From: Anaeramoeba ignava BMAN
Lineage: Eukaryota > Protista > Anaeramoebae
Assembly (NCBI GenBank): GCA_028826165.1
Contig: JAPDFW010000057.1
Span: forward strand, 310,001 to 374,000
DNA length: 64,000 nucleotides
Direction of reading: 5' to 3'
The notes beneath the pieces are model-generated. The model was not told where the DNA came from. It searched no databases and saw only the letters and a program-made list of their open reading frames with translations. How positions within the stretch are numbered: position 1 is the first letter of the stretch; every line of letters begins with the position of its first letter. Position numbers and translations under genes: made by a program. Positions 13,120 through 34,108 of the stretch are shown here, piece after piece.

Positions 13120-13294
13120 AAGATATTAAAAAAAAAAGTAAAGAAGAAGAAAATAGAAAAATGAAAAAAAAATATTAAAAAAAAATTTTTTTTCTTTTTT
13201 TCATTTTTTCATTTTTTAATTTAAATTTTTAATTTAAATTTTTATTTTAATTTTAATTTCTTTTAAATTATTTTTTTTAAATCATTTTTATATA

Positions 13295-13782
13295 ATGAAA
13301 TCTTCTAAAAATGAAAATTTAACAATCAAAATTAAAGATCTTCAACCAAAACTTCGAAATATTACAAGTACTTTTATTGTTTTAGAAAAGAGAAAAACCT
13401 TCCAAACACAACATAGTCAAACATTATCAACCTTTCTTGTTGCAGATGAAACAGCAGCAATACAATTTACAATATGGGATTATGATTGTTCATATATTAA
13501 AGAAGGAGATATTTTATTTTTAACAGGAGGTTACACTTTTTTATATAAAGACCAACTTGTTTTATATACAAGTAAATATGGAAGTGTTTCAAGAATTGGT
13601 GAGTTTACAATGGTTTATGTTGAAAACAATATGAGTGAATATCGTTGGAATTCTGATCAAAATGGAAAATGGGTAAAAAAAATTTTTTTTAAAAAATTGT
13701 TTTCCTTTTTTTCAAAAATTAATTTGTTTATTTTCTTCTTTATTTTTATTAGGTTTCAACTCCTCCTAATCAAATAAATTAA
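13295..13782 (+). CDS. NABP: OB-fold ssDNA-binding protein, SOSS-B/NABP-like, copy 1 (intron 13673-13752)
   Basis: KIKDLQP...FIVLE...LVADETAAIQFTIWD...GDIL.LTGGY...IGEFTMVYVE matches the hSSB1/SOSS-B pattern. Confidence 0.88.
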
Positions 13783-13880
13783 TTATTAAAATATTTTTTT
13801 TTCAAATTATATGTTGTTTTTTTGATATTATATTATTTAGAAAAAGAAAAAAAAATAAAAAGAATTTGGAATAATATTTA

Positions 13881-15449
13881 TTAATGATAATTTTCTTTAA
13901 GTGCAGTATTTAATATTTCTTCTAAATGATCTAAATTAATTATTAAATCATTTCCACTTTCTTCTGCATAATCTAACCAATATTCATTTCCAGTTATATG
14001 TGATATCCAATAAAACATTGAAAGATCTCCAAAAAATTGTTTTCCTTGAAATTCAATAATAATTGGATGAGATGAAGTAAATAATAAATTATAAAAAGCT
14101 CCTCCATGTGATCCAATTATAACTTTAGCTTTGGAGAAATATTCAACTAATTCTTTTAAATTTTCATGTTCTTTATGTGAAAAAATTTTGAATTTATTTC
14201 CAAATCTTTTTCTTAAATAATTTTCAACTTCTTCATTATTTATAACATTTCTTCCATTATAATTATTAACTCTTGGTAAATAAATAATATTTTCTTGTTG
14301 ATAATTTGGAATTTCTTCATTTGATTTGATTTTTAATATATTTTTAACTAAAAATGTTTTTATTTCTTGAAATTTTCTTGGATGAATAAATGGAATATTG
14401 CAAATTATTAATAATTTATCAATTTTATAAGTAATTGAAGGATCATAAACTTCAAGTTTAACATTAAAATCTTCTTTAACAAAATTTAATAATTTATAAG
14501 GAATTTCTTGCATATTTGAATCAACAAGAAGAGTCCATCCTTTATCTTTGATAAAAGGTCTTATTCTTATTAATGATCCTAATACTCTATCAATCCAATG
14601 TTGAAAAGCAGTTGAATGTTCAGCAATAGCTAATACAACTTTTTCCATATATTTGATATTATTTGAATTTGGTATTTCGAAATCTTTAATTTTAAAACCA
14701 TAAGGAGTGCAATTAGGAAATGATTGAAAAGAATAATCTTTGAAATAAGTTATATTTCCAAGTGAATTTATAGATGAATTGAAAACCATTTGTTCTTTTT
14801 CTTTATCAAAAATTTGTTCATATCTCTTTTGATGAAAATCATTTACAAATCTTTTAAATGCTTTATTATTTAGGAAATGAGGTAAATTTAAAGCAAAAGA
14901 ACCATAAAAAAATTGATATTTGATTTGATTTTGTGAAATGAATTGTTTTTGATATTTTAATGATTTATTATAATTTGGATAATCAATAAATCTAATAGAT
15001 TCATTATCATAAAATGAATAAGGATCTTCATAATTAATTAAATCAAAATCAAAATCAAAAATAAAATGAAGTATTTGAAGTTGAACTATTCAATGATTTA
15101 TTTTCATTTTTTAATTCTTTAATTTCTTTTTCAATTCCAAAAATTGAATTTTGAACATGAATAAATTCTTTTATAGTAATTTCTTTGGTTTTATTCTTTT
15201 CTAATTTTGGGAATTCATCTAAAATTTATTTAATTATTTATTATTAAATTTTTTATTAAATTTTTTAATTTAAATTTATTTTTCAATTTTAATTTTACAT
15301 TGAGTATCATTTATTAAAAAATTGAAAAGATAAAAAGTAATAAAAAAGCTAATTAATATTAATATTGATATTAATATTAATAATAAAATAAAACATTTAT
15401 TTTGAAATGTTCTTTTTGGATAATTTGCTTCTTTTGGATTATCTTCCAT
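13881..15449 (-). CDS. GT61 (DUF563)-like type II membrane glycosyltransferase, copy 1 (intron 15219-15298; homopolymer frameshift near 15060)
   Basis: N-terminal TM exon; FQHW, R.V.N.EE, FSKAKVIIGSHGGAFYNLLF, IIEF motifs. Confidence 0.8.
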
Positions 15450-15716
15450 TTATAAAATAAAAAATAAATGAAAGGAAAAAAAGTGAAAAGAAAAATTTTT
15501 TTTAAAATGAAAAATTTTTTCTTTTATTCTCTTTAATAATTTTGTTATTTATATTTGACACTTTTATTTATTCAATTTTTAAATAATAATTTTTAAATAA
15601 ATTTTTTTTTTTAATTTAAATTTTAATTTAAAAAATAAAATAAGATTTATTATTTTTCTAAATAATATAATATCAAAAAAAACAACATATAATTTGAAAA
15701 AAAAATATTTTAATAA

Positions 15717-16202
15717 TCAATTTATTTGATTAGGAGGAGTTGAAACCTAATAAAAATAAAGAAGAAAATAAACAAATTAATTTTTGAAAAAAAGGAAAAC
15801 AATTTTTTAAAAAATTTTTTTTACCCATTTTCCATTTTGATCAGAATTCCAACGATATTCACTCATATTGTTTTCAACATAAATCATTGTAAACTCACCA
15901 ATTCTTGAAACACTTCCATATTTACTTGTATATAAAACAAGTTGGTCTTTATATAAAAAAGTATAACCTCCTGTTAAAAATAAAATATCTCCTTCTTTAA
16001 TATATGAACAATCATAATCCCATATTGTAAATTGTATTGCTGCTGTTTCATCTGCAACAAGAAAGGTTGATAATGTTTGACTATGTTGTGTTTGGAAGGT
16101 TTTTCTCTTTTCTAAAACAATAAAAGTGATTGTAATATTTCTAAGTTTTGGTTGAAGATCTTTAATTTTGATTGTTAAATTTTCATTTTTAGAAGATTTC
16201 AT
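15717..16202 (-). CDS. NABP: SOSS-B/NABP-like ssDNA-binding protein, copy 2
   Basis: Near-identical inverted copy of 13295-13782 with the same intron. Confidence 0.88.
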
Positions 16203-16336
16203 TATATAAAAATAATTTAAAAAAAATAATTTAAAAGAAATTAAAATTAAAAAATAAAAATTAAAATAAAAAATTAAATAAAAAAATTTAAATAAAAAAA
16301 TTTCATTTTTTTTCTTCTTCTTTTTTTAAATAAAAA

Positions 16337-17350
16337 ATGAAAGTTAAAGAAATCCAAAATAACAATGAATTCCAATTAAAATTTAATCGCAAAACAACAT
16401 ATACACTTATTTTCATTTTTTTTATTTTATCATTTACATTTTTTTTACTTTTAAAATCAACTCAAAATAAGAATGAAAATGAAAATCAAAATGAAAATCA
16501 AAATGAAAAGGAAAAGGAAATTAAAAATAAAAAACAAAATTGGGATTTAAAAAAAGAAAAAATATGTATTTTAATGGTTGATGATCGAACTTTAGGAAAG
16601 AATTTTGATTTTTCATCAAACAAACAAATTCCTTTTTTTCATACATCAATTTTTGCAAATTCTTTCTATTCAAAATATCATGGATATGATTTCTACAGAA
16701 TAGATTCCAACAATAAAATCAATGATTCGAGGAAATTACTAAATTTATTTCAAGAGCATCCAACCAAACAAAGAACAAGTTATTGGAATAAATTAAAGAT
16801 AATTTGTCTTATGATGAATTATTATGATTATGAAATTATTTTATATTTAGATAGTGATGCTGTTTTTTTTGATTTTGAAAAAACAATCGAAGATTTTATT
16901 GTGGAAAATGTTAATTATTCAGAAAATATCTCTTTGATATTAACCAAAGATCTTGAAATCTCACTTGATTATGTAAATACAGGAGTACTTATATTTATCA
17001 ACAATGATTTCTCAAAGAAAATGATACTTGATTGGTATAACCTTCCTATAACAAATCCTGGTTTCGAATTTTCGCTAAATGTTGGATCATCAGAGCAGCC
17101 TGCAATGGGAGAATATATGTACAAAACTGAACCTTGGGAATCACACATTCATATTCTTCCTCTTAATACAACAAATGGTCCTGATGGTGAATTTATTAGA
17201 CATTTTTGGGGTGCAGTTCCTTGGGAAGAAAGAAATGATCAAATATTCCAAATTTTTATTAATTATTCTTATCATTTTCATAATTTTCTTGAACAAATTC
17301 AATCTCAAAATTTTTCATCTCAAATTTCTAAATTTATTGATAATTCTTAA
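16337..17350 (+). CDS. GT34 (GMA12/MNN10-like) glycosyltransferase, copy 1
   Basis: N-terminal TM anchor; YSKYHGY, WNKL, YLDSDA (DxD), NTGV, EQ, FIRHFWG. Confidence 0.8.
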   Translation: MKVKEIQNNNEFQLKFNRKTTYTLIFIFFILSFTFFLLLKSTQNKNENENQNENQNEKEKEIKNKKQNWDLKKEKICILMVDDRTLGKNFDFSSNKQIPFFHTSIFANSFYSKYHGYDFYRIDSNNKINDSRKLLNLFQEHPTKQRTSYWNKLKIICLMMNYYDYEIILYLDSDAVFFDFEKTIEDFIVENVNYSENISLILTKDLEISLDYVNTGVLIFINNDFSKKMILDWYNLPITNPGFEFSLNVGSSEQPAMGEYMYKTEPWESHIHILPLNTTNGPDGEFIRHFWGAVPWEERNDQIFQIFINYSYHFHNFLEQIQSQNFSSQISKFIDNS

Positions 17351-17447
17351 ATTGAAAAAGAATAAATTTTCATTCCACATTTTTTTTAATCATTTTCAAG
17401 AATTTTTCAATTTAAAAAAAAATAAAAAGAATTTGGAATAATATTTA

Positions 17448-19000
17448 TTAATGATAATTTTCTTTAAGTGCAGTATTTAATATTTCTTCTAAATGATCTA
17501 AATTAATAATTAAATCATTTTCACTTTCTTCTGCATAATCTAACCAATATTCATTTCCAGTTGTATGTGATATCCAATAAAACATTGAAAAATCTCCAAA
17601 AATCGTTTTCCTTGAAATTCAATAATAATTGGATGAGATGAAGCAAATAATAAATTATAAAAAGCTCCTCCATGTGATCCAATTATAACTTTAGCTTTGG
17701 AGAAATATTCAACTAATTCTTTTAAGTTTTCATGTTCTTTATGTGAAAAAATTTTGAATTTATTTCCAAATCTTTTTCTTAAATAATTTTCAACTTCTTC
17801 ATTATTTATAACATTTCTTCCATTATAATTATTAACTCTTGGTAAATAAATAATATTTTCTTGTTGATAATTTGGAATTTCTTCATTTGATTTGATTTTC
17901 AATATATTTTTAACTAAAAATGTTTTTATTTCTTGAAATTTTCTTGGATGAACAAATGGAATATTACAAATTATTAATAATTTATCAATTTTATAAGTAA
18001 TTGAAGGATCATAAACTTCAAGTTTAACATTAAAATCTTCTTTAACAAGATTTAATAATTTATAAGGAATTTCTTGCATATTTGAATCAACAAGAAGAGT
18101 CCATCCTTTATCTTTGATAAAAGGTCTTATTCTTATTAATGATCCTAATACTCTATCAATCCAATGTTGAAAAGCAGTTGAATGTTCAGCAATAGCTAAT
18201 ACAACTTTTTCCATATATTTGATATTATTTGAATTTGGTATTTCGAAATCTTTAATTTTCAAACCATAAGGAGTGCAATTAGGAAATGATTGAAAAGAAT
18301 AATTTTTGAAATAAGTTATATTTCCAAGTGAATTTATAGATGAATTGAAAACCATTTGTTCTTTTTCTTTATCAAAAATTTGTTCATATCTTGTTTGATG
18401 AAAATCATTTACAAATCTTTTAAATGCTTTATTATTTAGGAAATGAGGTAAATTTAAAGCAAAAGAACCATAAAAAAATTGATATTTGATTTGATTTTGT
18501 GAAATGAATTGTTTTTGATATTTTAATGATTTATTATAATTTGGATAATCAATAAATCTAATAGATTCATTATCATAAAATGAATAAGGATCTTCATAAT
18601 TAATTAAATCAAAATCAAAATCAAAATAAAATGAATTATTTGAAGTTGAACTATCCAATGATTTATTTTCATTTTTTAATTCTTTAATTTCTTTTTCAAT
18701 TCCAAAAATTGAATTTTGAACATGAATAAATTCTTTTATAGTAATTTCTTTGGTTTTATTCTTTTCTAATTTTGGGAATTCATCTAAAATTTATTTATTA
18801 TTTATTTATTTTATTTTTATTAAATTTTTTAATTTTAATTTAAATTTACATTGAGTATCATTTATTAAAAAATTGAAAAGATAAAAAGTAATAAAAAAGC
18901 TAATTAATATTAATATTGATATTAATATTAATAATAAAATAAAACATTTATTTTGAAATGTTCTTTTTGGATAATTTGCTTCTTTTGGATTATCTTCCAT
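17448..19000 (-). CDS. GT61-like glycosyltransferase, copy 2 (homopolymer frameshift near 17600)
   Basis: ORFs 18806-19000 and 17540-18658 are near-identical to copy 1. Confidence 0.8.
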
Positions 19001-19260
19001 TTATAAAATAAAAAATAAAAATAAAAAGTGAAAAGAAAAATTTTTTTTTAAAATGAAAAATTTTTTCTTTTATTCTCTTTAATAATTTTGTTATTTATAT
19101 TTGACACTTTTATTTATTCAATTTTTAAATAATATTTTTTAAATAAATTTTTTATTTTATTTAAATTTTAATTTAAAAAATAAAATAAGATTTATTATTT
19201 TTCTAAATAATATAATATCAAAAAAACAACATATAATTTGAAAAAAAAATATTTTAATAA

Positions 19261-19747
19261 TCAATTTATTTGATTAGGAGGAGTTGAAACCTAATAAAAA
19301 TAAAGAAGAAAATAAACAAATTAATTTTTGAAAAAAAGGAAAACAATTTTTTAAAAAAATTTTTTTTACCCATTTTCCATTTTGATCAGAATTCCAACGA
19401 TATTCACTCATATTGTTTTCAACATAAATCATTGTAAACTCACCAATTCTTGAAACACTTCCATATTTACTTGTATATAAAACAAGTTGGTCTTTATATA
19501 AAAAAGTGTAACCTCCTGTTAAAAATAAAATATCTCCTTCTTTAATATATGAACAATCATAATCCCATATTGTAAATTGTATTGCTGCTGTTTCATCTGC
19601 AACAAGAAAGGTTGATAATGTTTGACTATGTTGTGTTTGGAAGGTTTTTCTCTTTTCTAAAACAATAAAAGTGATTGTAATATTTCTAAGTTTTGGTTGA
19701 AGATCTTTAATTTTAATTGTTAAATTTTCATTTTTAGAAGATTTCAT
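19261..19747 (-). CDS. NABP: SOSS-B/NABP-like ssDNA-binding protein, copy 3
   Basis: Same exon-1 protein as copy 2, same intron and last exon. Confidence 0.88.
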
Positions 19748-19869
19748 TATATAAAAATAATTTAAAAAAAATGATTTAAAAGAAATTAAAATTAAAAAAT
19801 AAAAAATTAAATTAAAAATTTAAATTAAAAAAATTTCATTTTTTTTCTTCTTCTTTTTTTAAATAAAAA

Positions 19870-20883
19870 ATGAAAGTTAAAGAAATCCGAAATAACAATG
19901 AATTCCAATTAAAATTTAATCGCAAAACAACATATGCACTTATTTTCATTTTTTTTATTTTATCATTTACATTTTTTTTACTTTTAAAATCAACTCAAAT
20001 TAAGAATGAAAATGAAAATCAAAATGAAAATCAAAATGAAAATGAAAAGGAAATTAAAAATAAAAAACAAAATTGGGATTTAAAAAAAGAAAAAATATGT
20101 ATTTTAATGGTTGATGATCGAACTTTAGGAAAGAATTTTGATTTTTCATCAAACAAACAAATTCCTTTTTTTCATACATCAATTTTTGCAAATTCTTTCT
20201 ATTCAAAATATCATGGATATGATTTCTACAGAATAGATTCCAACAATAAAATCAATGATTCGAGGAAATTACTAAATTTATTTCAAGAAGCACCAAATTT
20301 AGTTAGATTACCTCCTTGGAGTAAATTAAAGATGATTTATCTTATGATGAATTATTATGATTATGAAATTATTTTATATTTAGATAGTGATTCTGTTTTT
20401 TTTGATTTTGAAAGAACAATTGAAGATTTCATTGTGGAAAATGTTAATTATTCAGAAAATATCTCTTTGATATTAACAAGAGATAGGGATGTTGTATCTG
20501 ATTATGTAAATTCAGGAGTACTTATATTTATCAACAATGATTTCTCAAAGAAAATGATACTTGATTGGTATAATCTCCCTATAACAATTCCTGATTTCCA
20601 ATATTCAATCAACGGAGGAGCAGCAGAACAAACTCCTATGGGTCAATATATGTATAAAACTGAACCTTGGAAATCACACATTCATATTCTTCCTCTTAAT
20701 ACAACAAATGGTCCTGATGGTGAATTTATTAGACATTTTTGGGGTGCAGTTCCTTGGGAAGAAAGAAGTGATCAAATATTCCAAATTTTTATTAATTATT
20801 CTTATCATTTTCATAATTTTCTTGAACAAATTCAATCTCAAAATTTTTCATCTCAAATTTCTAAATTTATTGATAATCCTTAA
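19870..20883 (+). CDS. GT34-like glycosyltransferase, copy 2
   Basis: 337-aa paralog of 16337-17350; WSKL, YLDSDS, NSGV. Confidence 0.8.
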   Translation: MKVKEIRNNNEFQLKFNRKTTYALIFIFFILSFTFFLLLKSTQIKNENENQNENQNENEKEIKNKKQNWDLKKEKICILMVDDRTLGKNFDFSSNKQIPFFHTSIFANSFYSKYHGYDFYRIDSNNKINDSRKLLNLFQEAPNLVRLPPWSKLKMIYLMMNYYDYEIILYLDSDSVFFDFERTIEDFIVENVNYSENISLILTRDRDVVSDYVNSGVLIFINNDFSKKMILDWYNLPITIPDFQYSINGGAAEQTPMGQYMYKTEPWKSHIHILPLNTTNGPDGEFIRHFWGAVPWEERSDQIFQIFINYSYHFHNFLEQIQSQNFSSQISKFIDNP

Positions 20884-20981
20884 ATTGAAAAAGAATAAAT
20901 TTTCATTCCACATTTTTTTCAATCATTTTCAAGAATTTTTCCAATTTAAAAAAAAATAAAAAGAATTTGGAATAATATTTA

Positions 20982-22519
20982 TTAATGATAATTTTCTTTA
21001 AGTGCAATATTTAATATTTCTTCTAAATGATCTAAATTAATTATTAAATCATTTCCACTTTCTTCTGCATAATCTAACCAATATTCATTTCCAGTTGTAT
21101 GTGATATCCAATAAAACATTGAAAGTGTACCAGGAAAGGGTTTTCCTTGAAATTCAATAATAATTGGATGAGATAAAGTAAATAATAAATTATAAAAAGC
21201 TCCTCCATGTGATCCAATTATAACTTTAGCTTTGGAGAAATATTCAATTAATTCTTTTAAATTTTCATGTTCTTTATGTGAAAAAATTTTAAATTTATTT
21301 CCAAATCTTTTTCTTAAATAATTTTCAACTTCTTCATTATTTATAACATTTCTTCCATTATAATTATTAACTCTTGGTAAATAAATGATATTTTCTTGTT
21401 GATAATTTGGAATTTCTTCATTTGATTTGATTTTTAATATATTTTTAACTAAAAATGTTTTTATTTCTTGAAATTTTCTTGGATGAACAAATGGAATATT
21501 ACAAATTATTAATAATTTATCAATTTTATAAGTAATTGAAGGATCATAAACTTCAAGTTTAACATTAAAATCTTCTTTAACAAAATTTAATAATTTATAA
21601 GGAATTTCTTGCATATTCGAATCAATAAGAAGAGTCCATCCTTTATCTTTAATAAAAGGTCTTATTCTTATTAATGATCCTAATACTCTATCAATCCAAT
21701 GTTGAAAAGCAGTTGAATAATGAGCCATAGCTAATACAACTTTTTCCATATGTTTGATATTATTTGAATTTGGTATTTTGAAATCTTTAATTTTAAAACC
21801 CTCAGGAGTGCAATTAGGAAATGATTGAAAAGAATAATTTTTGAAATAAGTTATATTTCCAAGTGAATTTATAGATGAATTGAAAACCATTTGTTGATTT
21901 TTTTCATCAAAAATTTGTTTAAATCTTCTTTGTTGATCGTTATCCACAAATCTTTTAAATGCTTTATTATTTAGGAAATGAGGTAAATTTAAAGCAAAAG
22001 AACCATAAAAAAATTGATATTTGATTTGATTTTGTGAAATGAATTGTTTTTGATATTTTAATGATTTATTATAATTTGGATAATCAATAAATCTAATAGA
22101 TTCATTATCATAAAATGAATAAGGATCTTCATAATTAATTAAATCAAAATCAAAATCAAAATAAAATGAAGTATTTGAAGTTGAACTATTTAATGATTTA
22201 TTTTCATTTTTTAATTCTTTAATTTCTTTTTCAATTCCAAAAATTGAATTTTGAACATGAATAAATTCTTTTATAGTAATTTCTTTGGTTTTATTCTTTT
22301 CTAATTTTGGGAATTCATCTAAAATTTATTAAATTTTTTAATTTATTAAATTTTTTATTTATTATTAAATTTTTAATTTAAATTTACATTGAGTATCATT
22401 TATTAAAAAATTGAAAAGATAAAAAGTAATAAAAAGCTAATTAATATTAATATTAAAATAAAACATTTATTTTGAAATGTTCTTTTTGAATAATTTGTTT
22501 TTCTTGGATTATCTTCCAT
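20982..22519 (-). CDS. GT61-like glycosyltransferase, copy 3 (indels in exon 1)
   Basis: ORF 20982-21947 plus upstream sequence collinear with copies 1 and 2. Confidence 0.8.
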
Positions 22520-22614
22520 TTATAAAATAAAAAAAAATGAAAGGAAAAAATGAAAAAAAATTTTTTTTAATTGTTTGAAAAGTAAATTTTTGATTTTTAT
22601 TAAATCTATTTGAA

Positions 22615-30758: not shown

Positions 30759-33700
30759 ATGATTCAAAATCAAAAAAAAAGAAAAAAAATTCTAGAAAAA
30801 TTATCAATTATTCCTCAAATCAAAGAAGCAAAATTAAATAATGAAAATTTATTATCAAAAAAAATACATTTTGAAAATAAAGAAAATTCAAATTTTGATT
30901 TATCAATTTTGGTTTCAATTAATTTTATTTCAAGAAATATAACAGAAGGATCATATTTCACATTTACAAAACATCACATTATTTCTGGAAACACATCATT
31001 TGCTTTTCCTTTTCCATTTGAACAATTTCCAAAAAATGAAAAAATTATATTAAAAACCACATCAAATGATGGAAAATTTTCGGCTTATTTTTTGCAATCA
31101 AAAGATGGAAAATACAGTATCCAAATTTGGAACCAACACCAAATGATTCATACAAATCAAGTCCCAAAAGATTTGCATGGAGTTGTTTATACAGATGATT
31201 ATTTTCAATGCTTTAAATTTTCACCAGATGCAAAAAAACTAGTTTATACTGCTGAAGCCAAAAACGATGAAATGAAAAAAAGTTTTTGGGAAAATGATTG
31301 TGCAAAAACTCCTGTTAATGATTGGGGAGAGGATTTCCAAGGCAAAACATCTCCATGTCTGTTTGTTTATGATATTCAAGAGAATAAAATTTTGGATATT
31401 TTTGGAAATTTGAAGAAATTTGAGGATCAAAATAATTCAAATAAATCAATCACAACAAACAAGAATTTTCAAGTTAATCAGACAAACACATCTTTTGGAT
31501 CAGCGATATGGCTTGATAATGATATAATTATTTGTTGTGGATATGAAAATGAGCCTTTTAGACTTGGAATGAGATTCTGTTATAACAGAAAATGTGGGAT
31601 ATATAAAATCCAAATGGATCCAAATCAAGAAATTTCAGAGATTGAATTACTTACACCAAATTTCTTCAATGCTGTTTCTCCTCGTTTAAATCAACAAAAA
31701 ACAAAAATTGCATTTATTTCAAATCCAAATACTTTTGGAACGCATAATTTTGCTAAACAATTATGTGTTTATGATCTGGAAACAAAACAAACTGATATTT
31801 TGATTGATATTCCTTTCAAAAAAAGCACTGATTTTATTTCTGAGGATGAATTTCCAGGTCTTTTCACAAATTTTCTTCCTCAAAATTGTTGGATTTCTGA
31901 TGATAAAAAAATACTAATAAATACAACTTGGGGAAGTTCAATGAAAATTATTGCTGTTGAAACACAGAAAAAGGATTATTCCAAACCAGAATTCAATATT
32001 ATTTCTCCACAAAAAGATTCGAGCTCTTGGTTTTTATTGGATTCAAATGAAAAAGGGATTCTTATTTACAATACAAATCCAATTCATCCATTTTCAGTTT
32101 ATTTTGTTAATTATCAATATATTTTTAAAGGAAACTTGAAAAATTGGATTTTAGTTGAAGATTCATCAAATTTTGGAAATGAAGAAACTAAATCAAATTT
32201 TGGAAATGAAAAAAATAAATCAAATTTTGGAAATGAAAAAATTAAGGCTGGAGTTTAGTTTAACAAAAAAAAATAAAAGATAAAATTTTAATTATCATTT
32301 TCATTGTCATTCTTATTTTTTTTCAAATGTTCTCGATAAAACGAACTAAATGCTTTTTTTGTGGTTCAACGAAGAGTTCTCAATTCAAGAAATATAAAAA
32401 TAAATTTCCACTATGCACTGCATGTTATCAAAATCGAACTGTGAAAGTATTTTTTTTTTTCTGACTCATATCCGATCGGATATAAGTGTGATCAATAAGA
32501 AAAGAAAAATTTTTTTTTCTGTTAATTATTTTAAAATTTTTCTGTTTGAAACAGAAATATCTCATAAATATTCATCAAATCAAATCAAATAAAAATTTAT
32601 AAGGAAAAAAAATGAATGAACTAATTGAAGATGAAAAGAAAAAGGAAGAAAAAGATCTTCCAAAAGATCACAAAAGGGAAAAATCAATTGATTTTGAAAT
32701 GAAAAATTAAAATCGAATTTGAAATGTACCAAAAAGAAAAACCTTCTCAATGAGGAAAAAAAACAGAAACAGGAAATTCAAATCTCTCCAAACTCAGTTC
32801 TGAAGTTGAAATTAGGAGAATTCATTCAATCAATTGGCAAAAAAATTAATATCGTTTAATGAGAGCTTCAATCGTTTGATTAACAAATTCGCGCTTAAAG
32901 CTGGTAATTTTTGGAAATATTATAACCTTCAAATAGGGTTTCAGTTTAAAATGGAAATGAAAAATCGAGGCATTAAACCTTCCTTTTAGAAGAAGAATTA
33001 AAAAAAAAATTGAAAGAGAGGAAGAAAAAGAGAAAAGAAGAAGAGCAAAAAAAACAAGATTATTTTAATCAAAAAATCAATAAGAAATATTAAATAACAA
33101 AAACAAATTTTTCAATCAATCTTGAGAAAAAAAGCTGAAAAATCGAAAAATTTTTTTTGTTGTTTTTTTTGATTTTCAAACTCGCCCCTTAAATCAAATT
33201 TTGAAAATGAAAAAATTAAATCAAATTTTGGAAATGGAGAAATTAAATCAAATTTTGAAAATGAAGAAATTAAATCAAATTTTGAAAATGAAAAAACTAA
33301 ATCAAATTTTGGATGGAATGTTTTTTCAATTCGACCAAAAGAGAAAGAAAATCATTTCTATGAAAGTGTGTTTATATTCAATAAAAAAGAGATTCCTAAA
33401 AGACCTCTTCTTGTTTCTCTTCATGGTGGACCACATTCATGTTACATTACAGAATATTCGCTGTTTAATAATTATTTCTTATCAATTGGATTCAACATTC
33501 TTTGTGTGAATTATCGAGGATCATTAGGATTTCATCCTGAAATTATGAAGTCACTTTTATCCAAAATTGGGAAACAAGATTCAGAAGATGTAAAAAATGC
33601 AATTGATGATTTAAAACAAAGAAAATTAATTTTGAACGAATCACCAATATTTATTGAAGGAATTTCATTTGGAGGATTTATAACATCACATTCAGTTTCA

Positions 33701-34108
33701 AGATTTCCTGGATTCTACAAAGCAGCTATGGTCAGAAACCCTGTAATAAACATTGCTGCTATGTCGAGTAATTCAGATGTTCCTGACTGGTGTCTTGTTG
33801 AATCAGGTCTTGATTCATCTCACTTATATTCATATTCTCTTCATGATATTCTTACTATGTCTCAATTTTCTCCAGTTAATTTTGTTCCTCAAATTTCTTC
33901 TCCTGTTTTAGTTGTTCTTGGTTGTTTGGATTCTCGTTGTAAAAATTCTGATGGTCTTCAACTTTATTCAAGTTTGAAAGCTTATAATTTGAAAACTGAT
34001 TTAATTTTGTATCAAGATGCAAATCATTTATTGGCAAATTTATCTGTTGAACTTGATTTACTTATTCGTTCTTCTGATTGGTTTTTAGGTTATTTACAAG
34101 AAAATTGA
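30759..34108 (+). CDS. APEH: Acylamino-acid-releasing enzyme (S9C peptidase), interrupted by an insertion at 32246-33188
   Basis: Propeller part HGVVYTDDYF, WGE, FCYNR; catalytic part LHGGPHS, VNYRGSLGF, GISFGG, RNPV, DVPDW, DSR, H. Removing the insertion plus one TTAA gives a single 800-aa ORF. Confidence 0.93.
32246..33188. mobile_element. 943-bp non-autonomous DNA transposon-like element with TTAA TSD (Kolobok-like ends)
   Basis: TTAA at 32242-32245 and 33189-33192; left end GGCTGGAGTTT, right end reverse-complement GGGGCGAGTTT (8/11), each followed by an A-tract; precise removal restores the host frame. Confidence 0.82.
32327..32989 (+). pseudogene. GATA-type C4 zinc-finger gene inside the element (intact first exon 32327-32446, probable intron 32447-32554, degenerate 3' part)
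   Basis: MFSIKRTKCFFCGSTKSSQFKKYKNKFPLCTACYQNRTVK = C-x2-C-x17-C-x2-C; GTATTT donor and ACAG acceptor; downstream coding-like fragments have stops. Confidence 0.62.

Follow-up and report, generated by a model that had tools for sequence, protein, structure and literature searches.

The Kolobok superfamily (Kapitonov and Jurka) is divided into several lineages (PMC9587614), some of which are known to encode a transposase only. Koloboks are known from trichomonads and other protists, and their termini are defined as 5'-RR...YY-3' (PMC9587614). Animal Kolobok transposases usually carry a THAP domain, and the T2-MITE of Xenopus is a presumed non-autonomous member of the superfamily (PMC6004289). 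Our literature search found no report of a Kolobok in Anaeramoeba and none of a GATA finger in a Kolobok.

We describe here an element in Anaeramoeba ignava that interrupts the gene for the acylamino-acid-releasing enzyme (APEH) within a 64,000-nucleotide stretch of the genome (the window), and that represents a real, recent insertion of a new family within this known superfamily. The element resembles the transposase-only trichomonad families Kolobok-n_TV and Kolobok-n_TrFo (PMC9587614) in its TTAA duplication, RR...YY termini and short inverted ends, and its last-glutamate motif is of the same T-x2-NESFN kind when compared by eye with Data S5 of that study. It differs from the protist Koloboks described there in being non-autonomous, in carrying a GATA-like finger at the 5' side, in having no KolX, nuclease or helicase gene, and in residing in a host that is not listed. 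The T2-MITE of Xenopus (PMC6004289) is likewise non-autonomous, with a TTAA target and purine-first ends, but T2-MITEs form predominant families with AGGRR ends, whereas the APEH element is present in two copies and has kept remnants of coding sequence. The APEH element is an internally deleted coding element and not a transposase-free MITE.

A TTAA-flanked insertion in the APEH gene

The features of the locus are collected in Table 1. The element begins with GGCTGGAGTTT and its reverse complement with GGGGCGAGTTT; these ends match at 8 of 11 positions and are followed by A-tracts, and their imperfect inverted similarity extends to about 45 bp. Among 50,427 pairs of TTAA lying 500-1500 bp apart in the window, the pair at the APEH element is the only one to enclose a GG...CC interval, and chance pairing is ruled out because a second full copy stands elsewhere in the genome, at an unrelated site, between a TTAA pair of its own. 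An earlier reading of this DNA, made from the letters alone (the sequence-only reading), had delimited the same GG...CC element and proposed that its removal restores the gene, and our analysis agrees on both counts. In-silico excision of the element with one TTAA yields 2403 nt (800 codons and a stop) with no internal stop, and with the element in place the frame meets a stop 4 codons past the junction.

Table 1. Features at the APEH insertion site (window coordinates).
Feature	Position	Strand	Remarks
APEH (acylamino-acid-releasing enzyme) 5' part	30759..32245	+	Codons 1-495, beta-propeller region; Pfam APEH_N, KAJ5077663.1 identity
Minisatellite units 1-3	32165..32245	+	27 bp each, SNFGNEExK type, left of insertion
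Left target-site TTAA	32242..32245	.	
Non-autonomous, internally deleted element, very probably Kolobok	32246..33188	+	943 bp as assembled; C76 copy 1096 bp
Left imperfect terminal inverted repeat	32246..32290	+	Core 32246-32256, GG first; identical in C76 copy
GATA-like zinc finger exon	32327..32446	+	40 codons, C-x2-C-x17-C-x2-C, GT donor at end
Probable intron	32447..32603	+	GT...AG, 19% GC, predicted from sequence
Perfect 16-bp palindrome	32468..32483	.	Two GATA cores, within the probable intron
Deletion-rich block	32638..33143	+	506 bp, probable consensus/polishing artefact
Kolobok transposase C-terminus remnant	32855..32944	+	Last catalytic Glu (FNESFN...NFWKYY); frameshifted continuation to ~33075
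Right imperfect terminal inverted repeat	33144..33188	-	Core 33178-33188, CC last; identical in C76 copy
Right target-site TTAA	33189..33192	.	
APEH 3' part	33193..34108	+	Units 4-8 of the minisatellite at 33193-33311, followed by the S9 catalytic domain (Ser654, Asp742, His774)

The APEH frame is otherwise without lesions. Pfam assigns the 5' part to APEH_N (5e-20) and the 3' part to Peptidase_S9 (8e-24), the catalytic motifs are intact (Ser654 within GISFGG, Asp742 and His774, plus HGGP), and the 5' half is 99% identical to A. ignava KAJ5077663.1. The target TTAA sits in unit 3 of a coding minisatellite of eight in-frame 27-bp units, a setting on which the sequence-only reading is silent. 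The product of the occupied allele is predicted to be truncated at about codon 499, upstream of the catalytic domain. An APEH paralogue at C57:417511-418221 has a 718-aa open frame and a catalytic domain that is 41% identical. Elsewhere in the window (13230-22520) lies a duplicated and inverted glycosyltransferase gene cluster, with GT34 at 16337 and GT61 at 17540-18658 plus copies.

The other full copy in the genome (C76:315753-316848) is 1096 bp long and lies within unrelated AT-rich satellite, with its own TTAA pair and identical ends; its flanks share no homology with those of the APEH insertion. A single substitution separates the two copies across their first 392 bp, and they therefore separated very recently, the family having moved recently. 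The presence of two dispersed, near-identical copies would point to cut-and-paste mobility. End-pattern and DNA searches of the assembly found neither a third full copy nor a longer parent, and besides the two copies the end patterns gave matches at chance level only; nor did the assembly yield an autonomous element with the same ends or with a GATA finger. The recent insertion proposed by the sequence-only reading is supported by the C76 copy, and its suggestion of a possibly undescribed family also holds, here as a new family of a known superfamily; of the two things it proposed to look for in the genome, another TTAA-flanked copy exists, and a longer autonomous partner was not found in the assembly.

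Two other loci resemble parts of the element. At C84:196987-197020 (L004:1493-1534), 34 bp are identical to the right subterminal region and follow a TTAA and an end of slightly changed sequence; this locus is perhaps the decayed solo end of a third copy. A single-copy 980-bp element at C126:763451-764430 (L037:1505-2484) is flanked by TTAA on both sides and has perfect 13-bp GG...CC ends that agree with the right end of the APEH element at 9 of 11 positions; no transposase remnant was detected in it.

The length of the element in the window deserves caution. The window and C76 copies differ at 42 places, 41 of which, including all 30 deletions (163 nt), fall within the 506-bp deletion-rich block; the binomial probability of such clustering, with the block covering 506 of the 943 bp (p 2e-10), is optimistic, since the limits of the block were set post hoc. 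Racon, Nanopolish and Pilon had been applied to correct the assembly, and the default window of Racon is 500 bp. Two replaced stretches in the block resemble the flanking APEH repeat, one of them scoring 41 against a maximum of 29 in the C76 copy. Reads with and without the element, if merged into one consensus, could produce this pattern. Three DNA runs from one sample contained 0.83, 0.78 and 0.77 of the sampled words, where the expected share is 0.84-0.86 for an artefactual block and 1.0 for a real one; contig drop-out also lowers these shares, which discriminate poorly and are consistent with an artefact without being decisive. Some of the single-A differences could instead be errors in the C76 copy. 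The block is probably a polishing artefact, possibly arising from empty-site reads, and we consider it quite likely that the true element here has the 1096-bp form of the C76 copy and that the 943-bp length was produced by consensus calling.

Transposase remnant and Kolobok relatives

Contrary to the sequence-only reading, which saw no transposase in the element, the 3' half preserves a Kolobok transposase C-terminus that includes the final catalytic glutamate. In the C76 copy this half reads as a transposase end broken by one stop and one frameshift. A genome search with a profile of five Kolobok-type C-termini, from which the element itself was left out, recovered the C76 copy at 50.8 bits (E 5e-12) and the window copy at 20.5 bits; the best of 500 shuffles reached 9.5 bits (C76) and 7.1 bits (window). 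Searched against 1.84 billion proteins, the same profile returned 568 relatives, and 6 of the 20 that were scanned pass the Pfam cut-off for PF20700. One PF20700 relative also carries a DEDDh exonuclease, an arrangement described for KolobokD in PMC9587614. The tie to named Koloboks is an indirect one, running through these PF20700 matches, the KolobokD-type protein and the motif compared by eye with Data S5.

A full-length profile of 77 sequences matches the element in the last-Glu region only, which indicates that the first two catalytic aspartates, the DxxH motif and the inner zinc finger have been deleted. The element shares with Koloboks the 4-bp TTAA duplication, the RR...YY termini, the imperfect terminal inverted repeats and the C-terminal transposase homology; it has no complete DDE triad, C/DxxH signature or zinc finger between D and E. 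The N-terminal THAP domain and the second gene, KolX, of the Kol0 and animal types had no match in the element pieces scanned, and the GATA-like finger is present instead. Judged from its sequence, the element retains both ends, a 5' gene start and the last 110-130 codons of a DDE transposase, the latter broken by a stop and a frameshift. Being an internal-deletion derivative with most of the catalytic core gone, it is unable to move by itself, in line with the non-autonomous status first attributed to it. The assignment to Kolobok, originally made from TTAA and the RR...YY ends, now has protein homology added to it, and we are highly confident that the APEH insertion is a non-autonomous Kolobok derivative with an internal deletion, belonging to a hitherto unnamed family.

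piggyBac transposons also duplicate a TTAA target, but their ends are CC...GG (YY...RR), not RR...YY, a contrast already drawn in the sequence-only reading. A piggyBac reading was rejected: the termini are GG...CC, a Pfam scan showed no piggyBac domain, and the remnant matches Kolobok-type, PF20700-related proteins.

A genome search with the transposase piece of the C76 copy identified an intact Kolobok on contig C77 (L076:4533-6674, minus strand). This 2142-bp element lies in satellite and is flanked by TTAA at either end. Its GG...CC termini are perfect inverted repeats of 12 bp, and it contains a single frame with D152, D241, DxxH at 266-269, an H-H-C-C finger and E410, which are the features given for Kolobok in PMC9587614. 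The C77 and APEH elements have in common the TTAA duplication, the GG...CC ends and a single gene, and the C77 protein is the closest match to the remnant read with X at its two breaks (26 of 64 residues, ~40%). The C77 ends differ, however (GGGAGTAGTGC), and are perfect over 12 bp where those of the APEH element are imperfect (8/11), and the C77 element is without a GATA finger. It is too diverged to be the parent of the APEH element. A copy of the C77 element on C37 is 90% identical, with its left end missing and stops present; upstream of this truncated copy (L077:1-2700), a transposase-like fragment and a ubiquitin-hydrolase (UCH) fragment probably belong to another decayed element.

The five-C-termini profile also detected about 15 further Kolobok-like loci in the genome, including those at C68:368831, C69:260397, C89:9392, C13:97361, C67:509103, C93:340151, C1:1001776, C64:33671, C100:145606, C9:18677, C122:63403, C35:499269 and C1:87213; some of the further loci fall in open frames of 600-1534 aa. 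Numerous Kolobok families thus reside in the A. ignava genome, and the trichomonads, in which the superfamily is known, are related to Anaeramoeba. In assembly GCA_029935755.1, a 4-kb AT-rich contig (L087) encodes an 843-aa Kolobok-type transposase related to that of C77.

The element was most likely excised at its GG...CC ends by a Kolobok transposase acting in trans and pasted into the TTAA of one 27-bp APEH repeat unit with duplication of the TTAA, the duplication itself being visible at the site. A complete Kolobok-type frame is present in the A. ignava transcriptome set. The ends of the APEH, C77 and C126 elements all have GG first and AGT at positions 7-9, and cross-mobilisation among the three is possible.

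A GATA-like finger exon near the left end

The finger encoded near the left end scores 21.8 bits against Pfam GATA (PF00320; E 1.4e-4), below the cut-off of 26.8, with a cysteine spacing that fits the family, and its best PDB sequence matches are GATA-3 and GATA-1. A single-sequence structure model (pLDDT 74) consists of a hairpin and a helix. A fold search with this model returned GATA fingers for all of the top 15 hits at TM ~0.7, each individually with E > 0.1, and the ESM Atlas gave no finger match of at least 0.9. To judge by this resemblance the finger is real and GATA-like. In both copies, use of the obvious acceptor of the probable intron that follows would bring a stop after 3 codons, barring an error in the count of an A-run, and neither one- nor two-intron models of the finger gene gave a clean in-frame join at the best-looking acceptor. 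The double-GATA palindrome within this intron is of weak significance, with 19 of 500 shuffles reaching its weighted score and 55 of 500 its length (p ~0.04-0.11).

The link between finger and transposase is drawn from position: the exon has the same strand as the transposase and begins 81 bp in from the left end, the place expected for an N-terminal DNA-binding exon. On balance we lean towards the finger being the element's own N-terminal DNA-binding module. The exon might alternatively be a captured fragment of a host transcription-factor gene lying outside the transposase gene, which we regard as a plausible but less probable origin. Capture would accord with the roughly 150 related transposases retrieved, none of which has a GATA-type finger and several of which carry the usual zinc ribbon, with the 18 fingers in the genome that score above the Pfam GATA cut-off, and with the lack of a clean splice to the downstream frame. 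A Pfam GATA scan of the genome placed no such finger near the other Kolobok loci. The position of the exon argues against capture, however, as do the absence from the genome of any host gene matching the 40-aa finger and the divergence of the finger from canonical GATA, in which SSQFKK replaces TPLWRR.

Occupied and probable empty APEH alleles

The NCBI model of the APEH protein is 755 aa long and requires a 1082-bp gap in the window, equal to the element, one TTAA and five repeat units. In no placement, as one intron or as two, does this gap have GT-AG, GC-AG, AT-AC, GT-AA or TA-AG ends, the only intron end types listed for the A. ignava genome. Gene prediction restricted to canonical ends would not build such a model, and transcript evidence may therefore underlie it. 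One might speculate that the three-unit junction in the model is the product of excision or of a deletion between repeats. The flanking repeats are in frame, so precise excision or any repeat-to-repeat deletion would reopen APEH. In a run from another study the share of words present was 0.61, not far from the 0.68-0.72 that a gene free of the element should give, although contig drop-out also lowers such shares. We think it fairly likely that an empty allele coexists in the sequenced culture, and a polymorphic insertion at APEH is likely. The heterozygosity raised by the sequence-only reading has indirect support from the deletion-rich block and the NCBI model.

Other explanations of the locus must be weighed against a polymorphic insertion. 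The same Kolobok derivative could have become fixed and have inactivated this copy of APEH, with the C57 paralogue (41%) covering its function and the 3' deletions reflecting real decay or plain unpolished error. The paralogue makes this conceivable, the assembly contains no second APEH haplotig with an empty site, no element-free 800-aa A. ignava APEH protein appeared in the databases searched with the two APEH halves as separate queries (where no transcriptome-derived APEH protein turned up either), and the genome authors treat the genome as haploid, ploidy itself not being established. Yet a recent copy would not decay by 30 deletions confined to one 506-bp block while 392 bp of the same element show a single change, the NCBI model passes over the element with no workable splice sites, and the rest of the APEH frame has no lesion; we consider fixation rather unlikely. 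An assembly artefact, in which the C76 element was misplaced into APEH and is absent from cells, would suit the corrupted appearance of the window copy's 3' half, the element-free product implied by the annotation, and the word shares, for which predictions of 0.84 (insertion absent) and 0.86 (insertion present) agree equally well with the runs. It is very improbable nonetheless: both junctions are base-exact at a duplicated TTAA within an in-frame repeat, the APEH flanks are unrelated to those of the C76 copy, and a long-read assembler presumably cannot invent such a join unless reads carry it. Slightly less probable still is that APEH tolerates the element through its removal from RNA as an intron. 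Donors of the GC type (32247, at the left end) and the GT type (32253 and 32258), together with the spliced product shown by the NCBI model, speak for splicing, but the right end has no AG, every in-frame canonical solution costs at least 48 APEH codons, and the NCBI junction has none of the ends listed above. With no canonical, frame-keeping ends at its borders, the intron reading was rejected, in agreement with the initial remark that no simple in-frame GT-AG pair would remove the element.

A fuller version of the polymorphic-insertion reading, which we offer tentatively and regard as less likely than not, joins two propositions: that the parent was a Kolobok lineage with a GATA-type DNA-binding finger, perhaps binding the double-GATA palindrome, and that the APEH insertion segregates in the culture, where in-frame, repeat-mediated deletion gives rise to revertant alleles.

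For users of the genome, the locus carries a warning that, at the insertion site, both the published gene model of APEH and some 500 bp of assembled sequence are probably wrong. It also provides a defined insertion in a single-exon APEH gene, at which occupancy and excision can be scored by PCR. If the finger does belong to the transposase, a GATA finger on a Kolobok transposase would be an added case of DNA-binding-domain exchange in DDE transposases. Together with the near-identical C76 copy, the APEH insertion documents recent Kolobok movement in a free-living metamonad.
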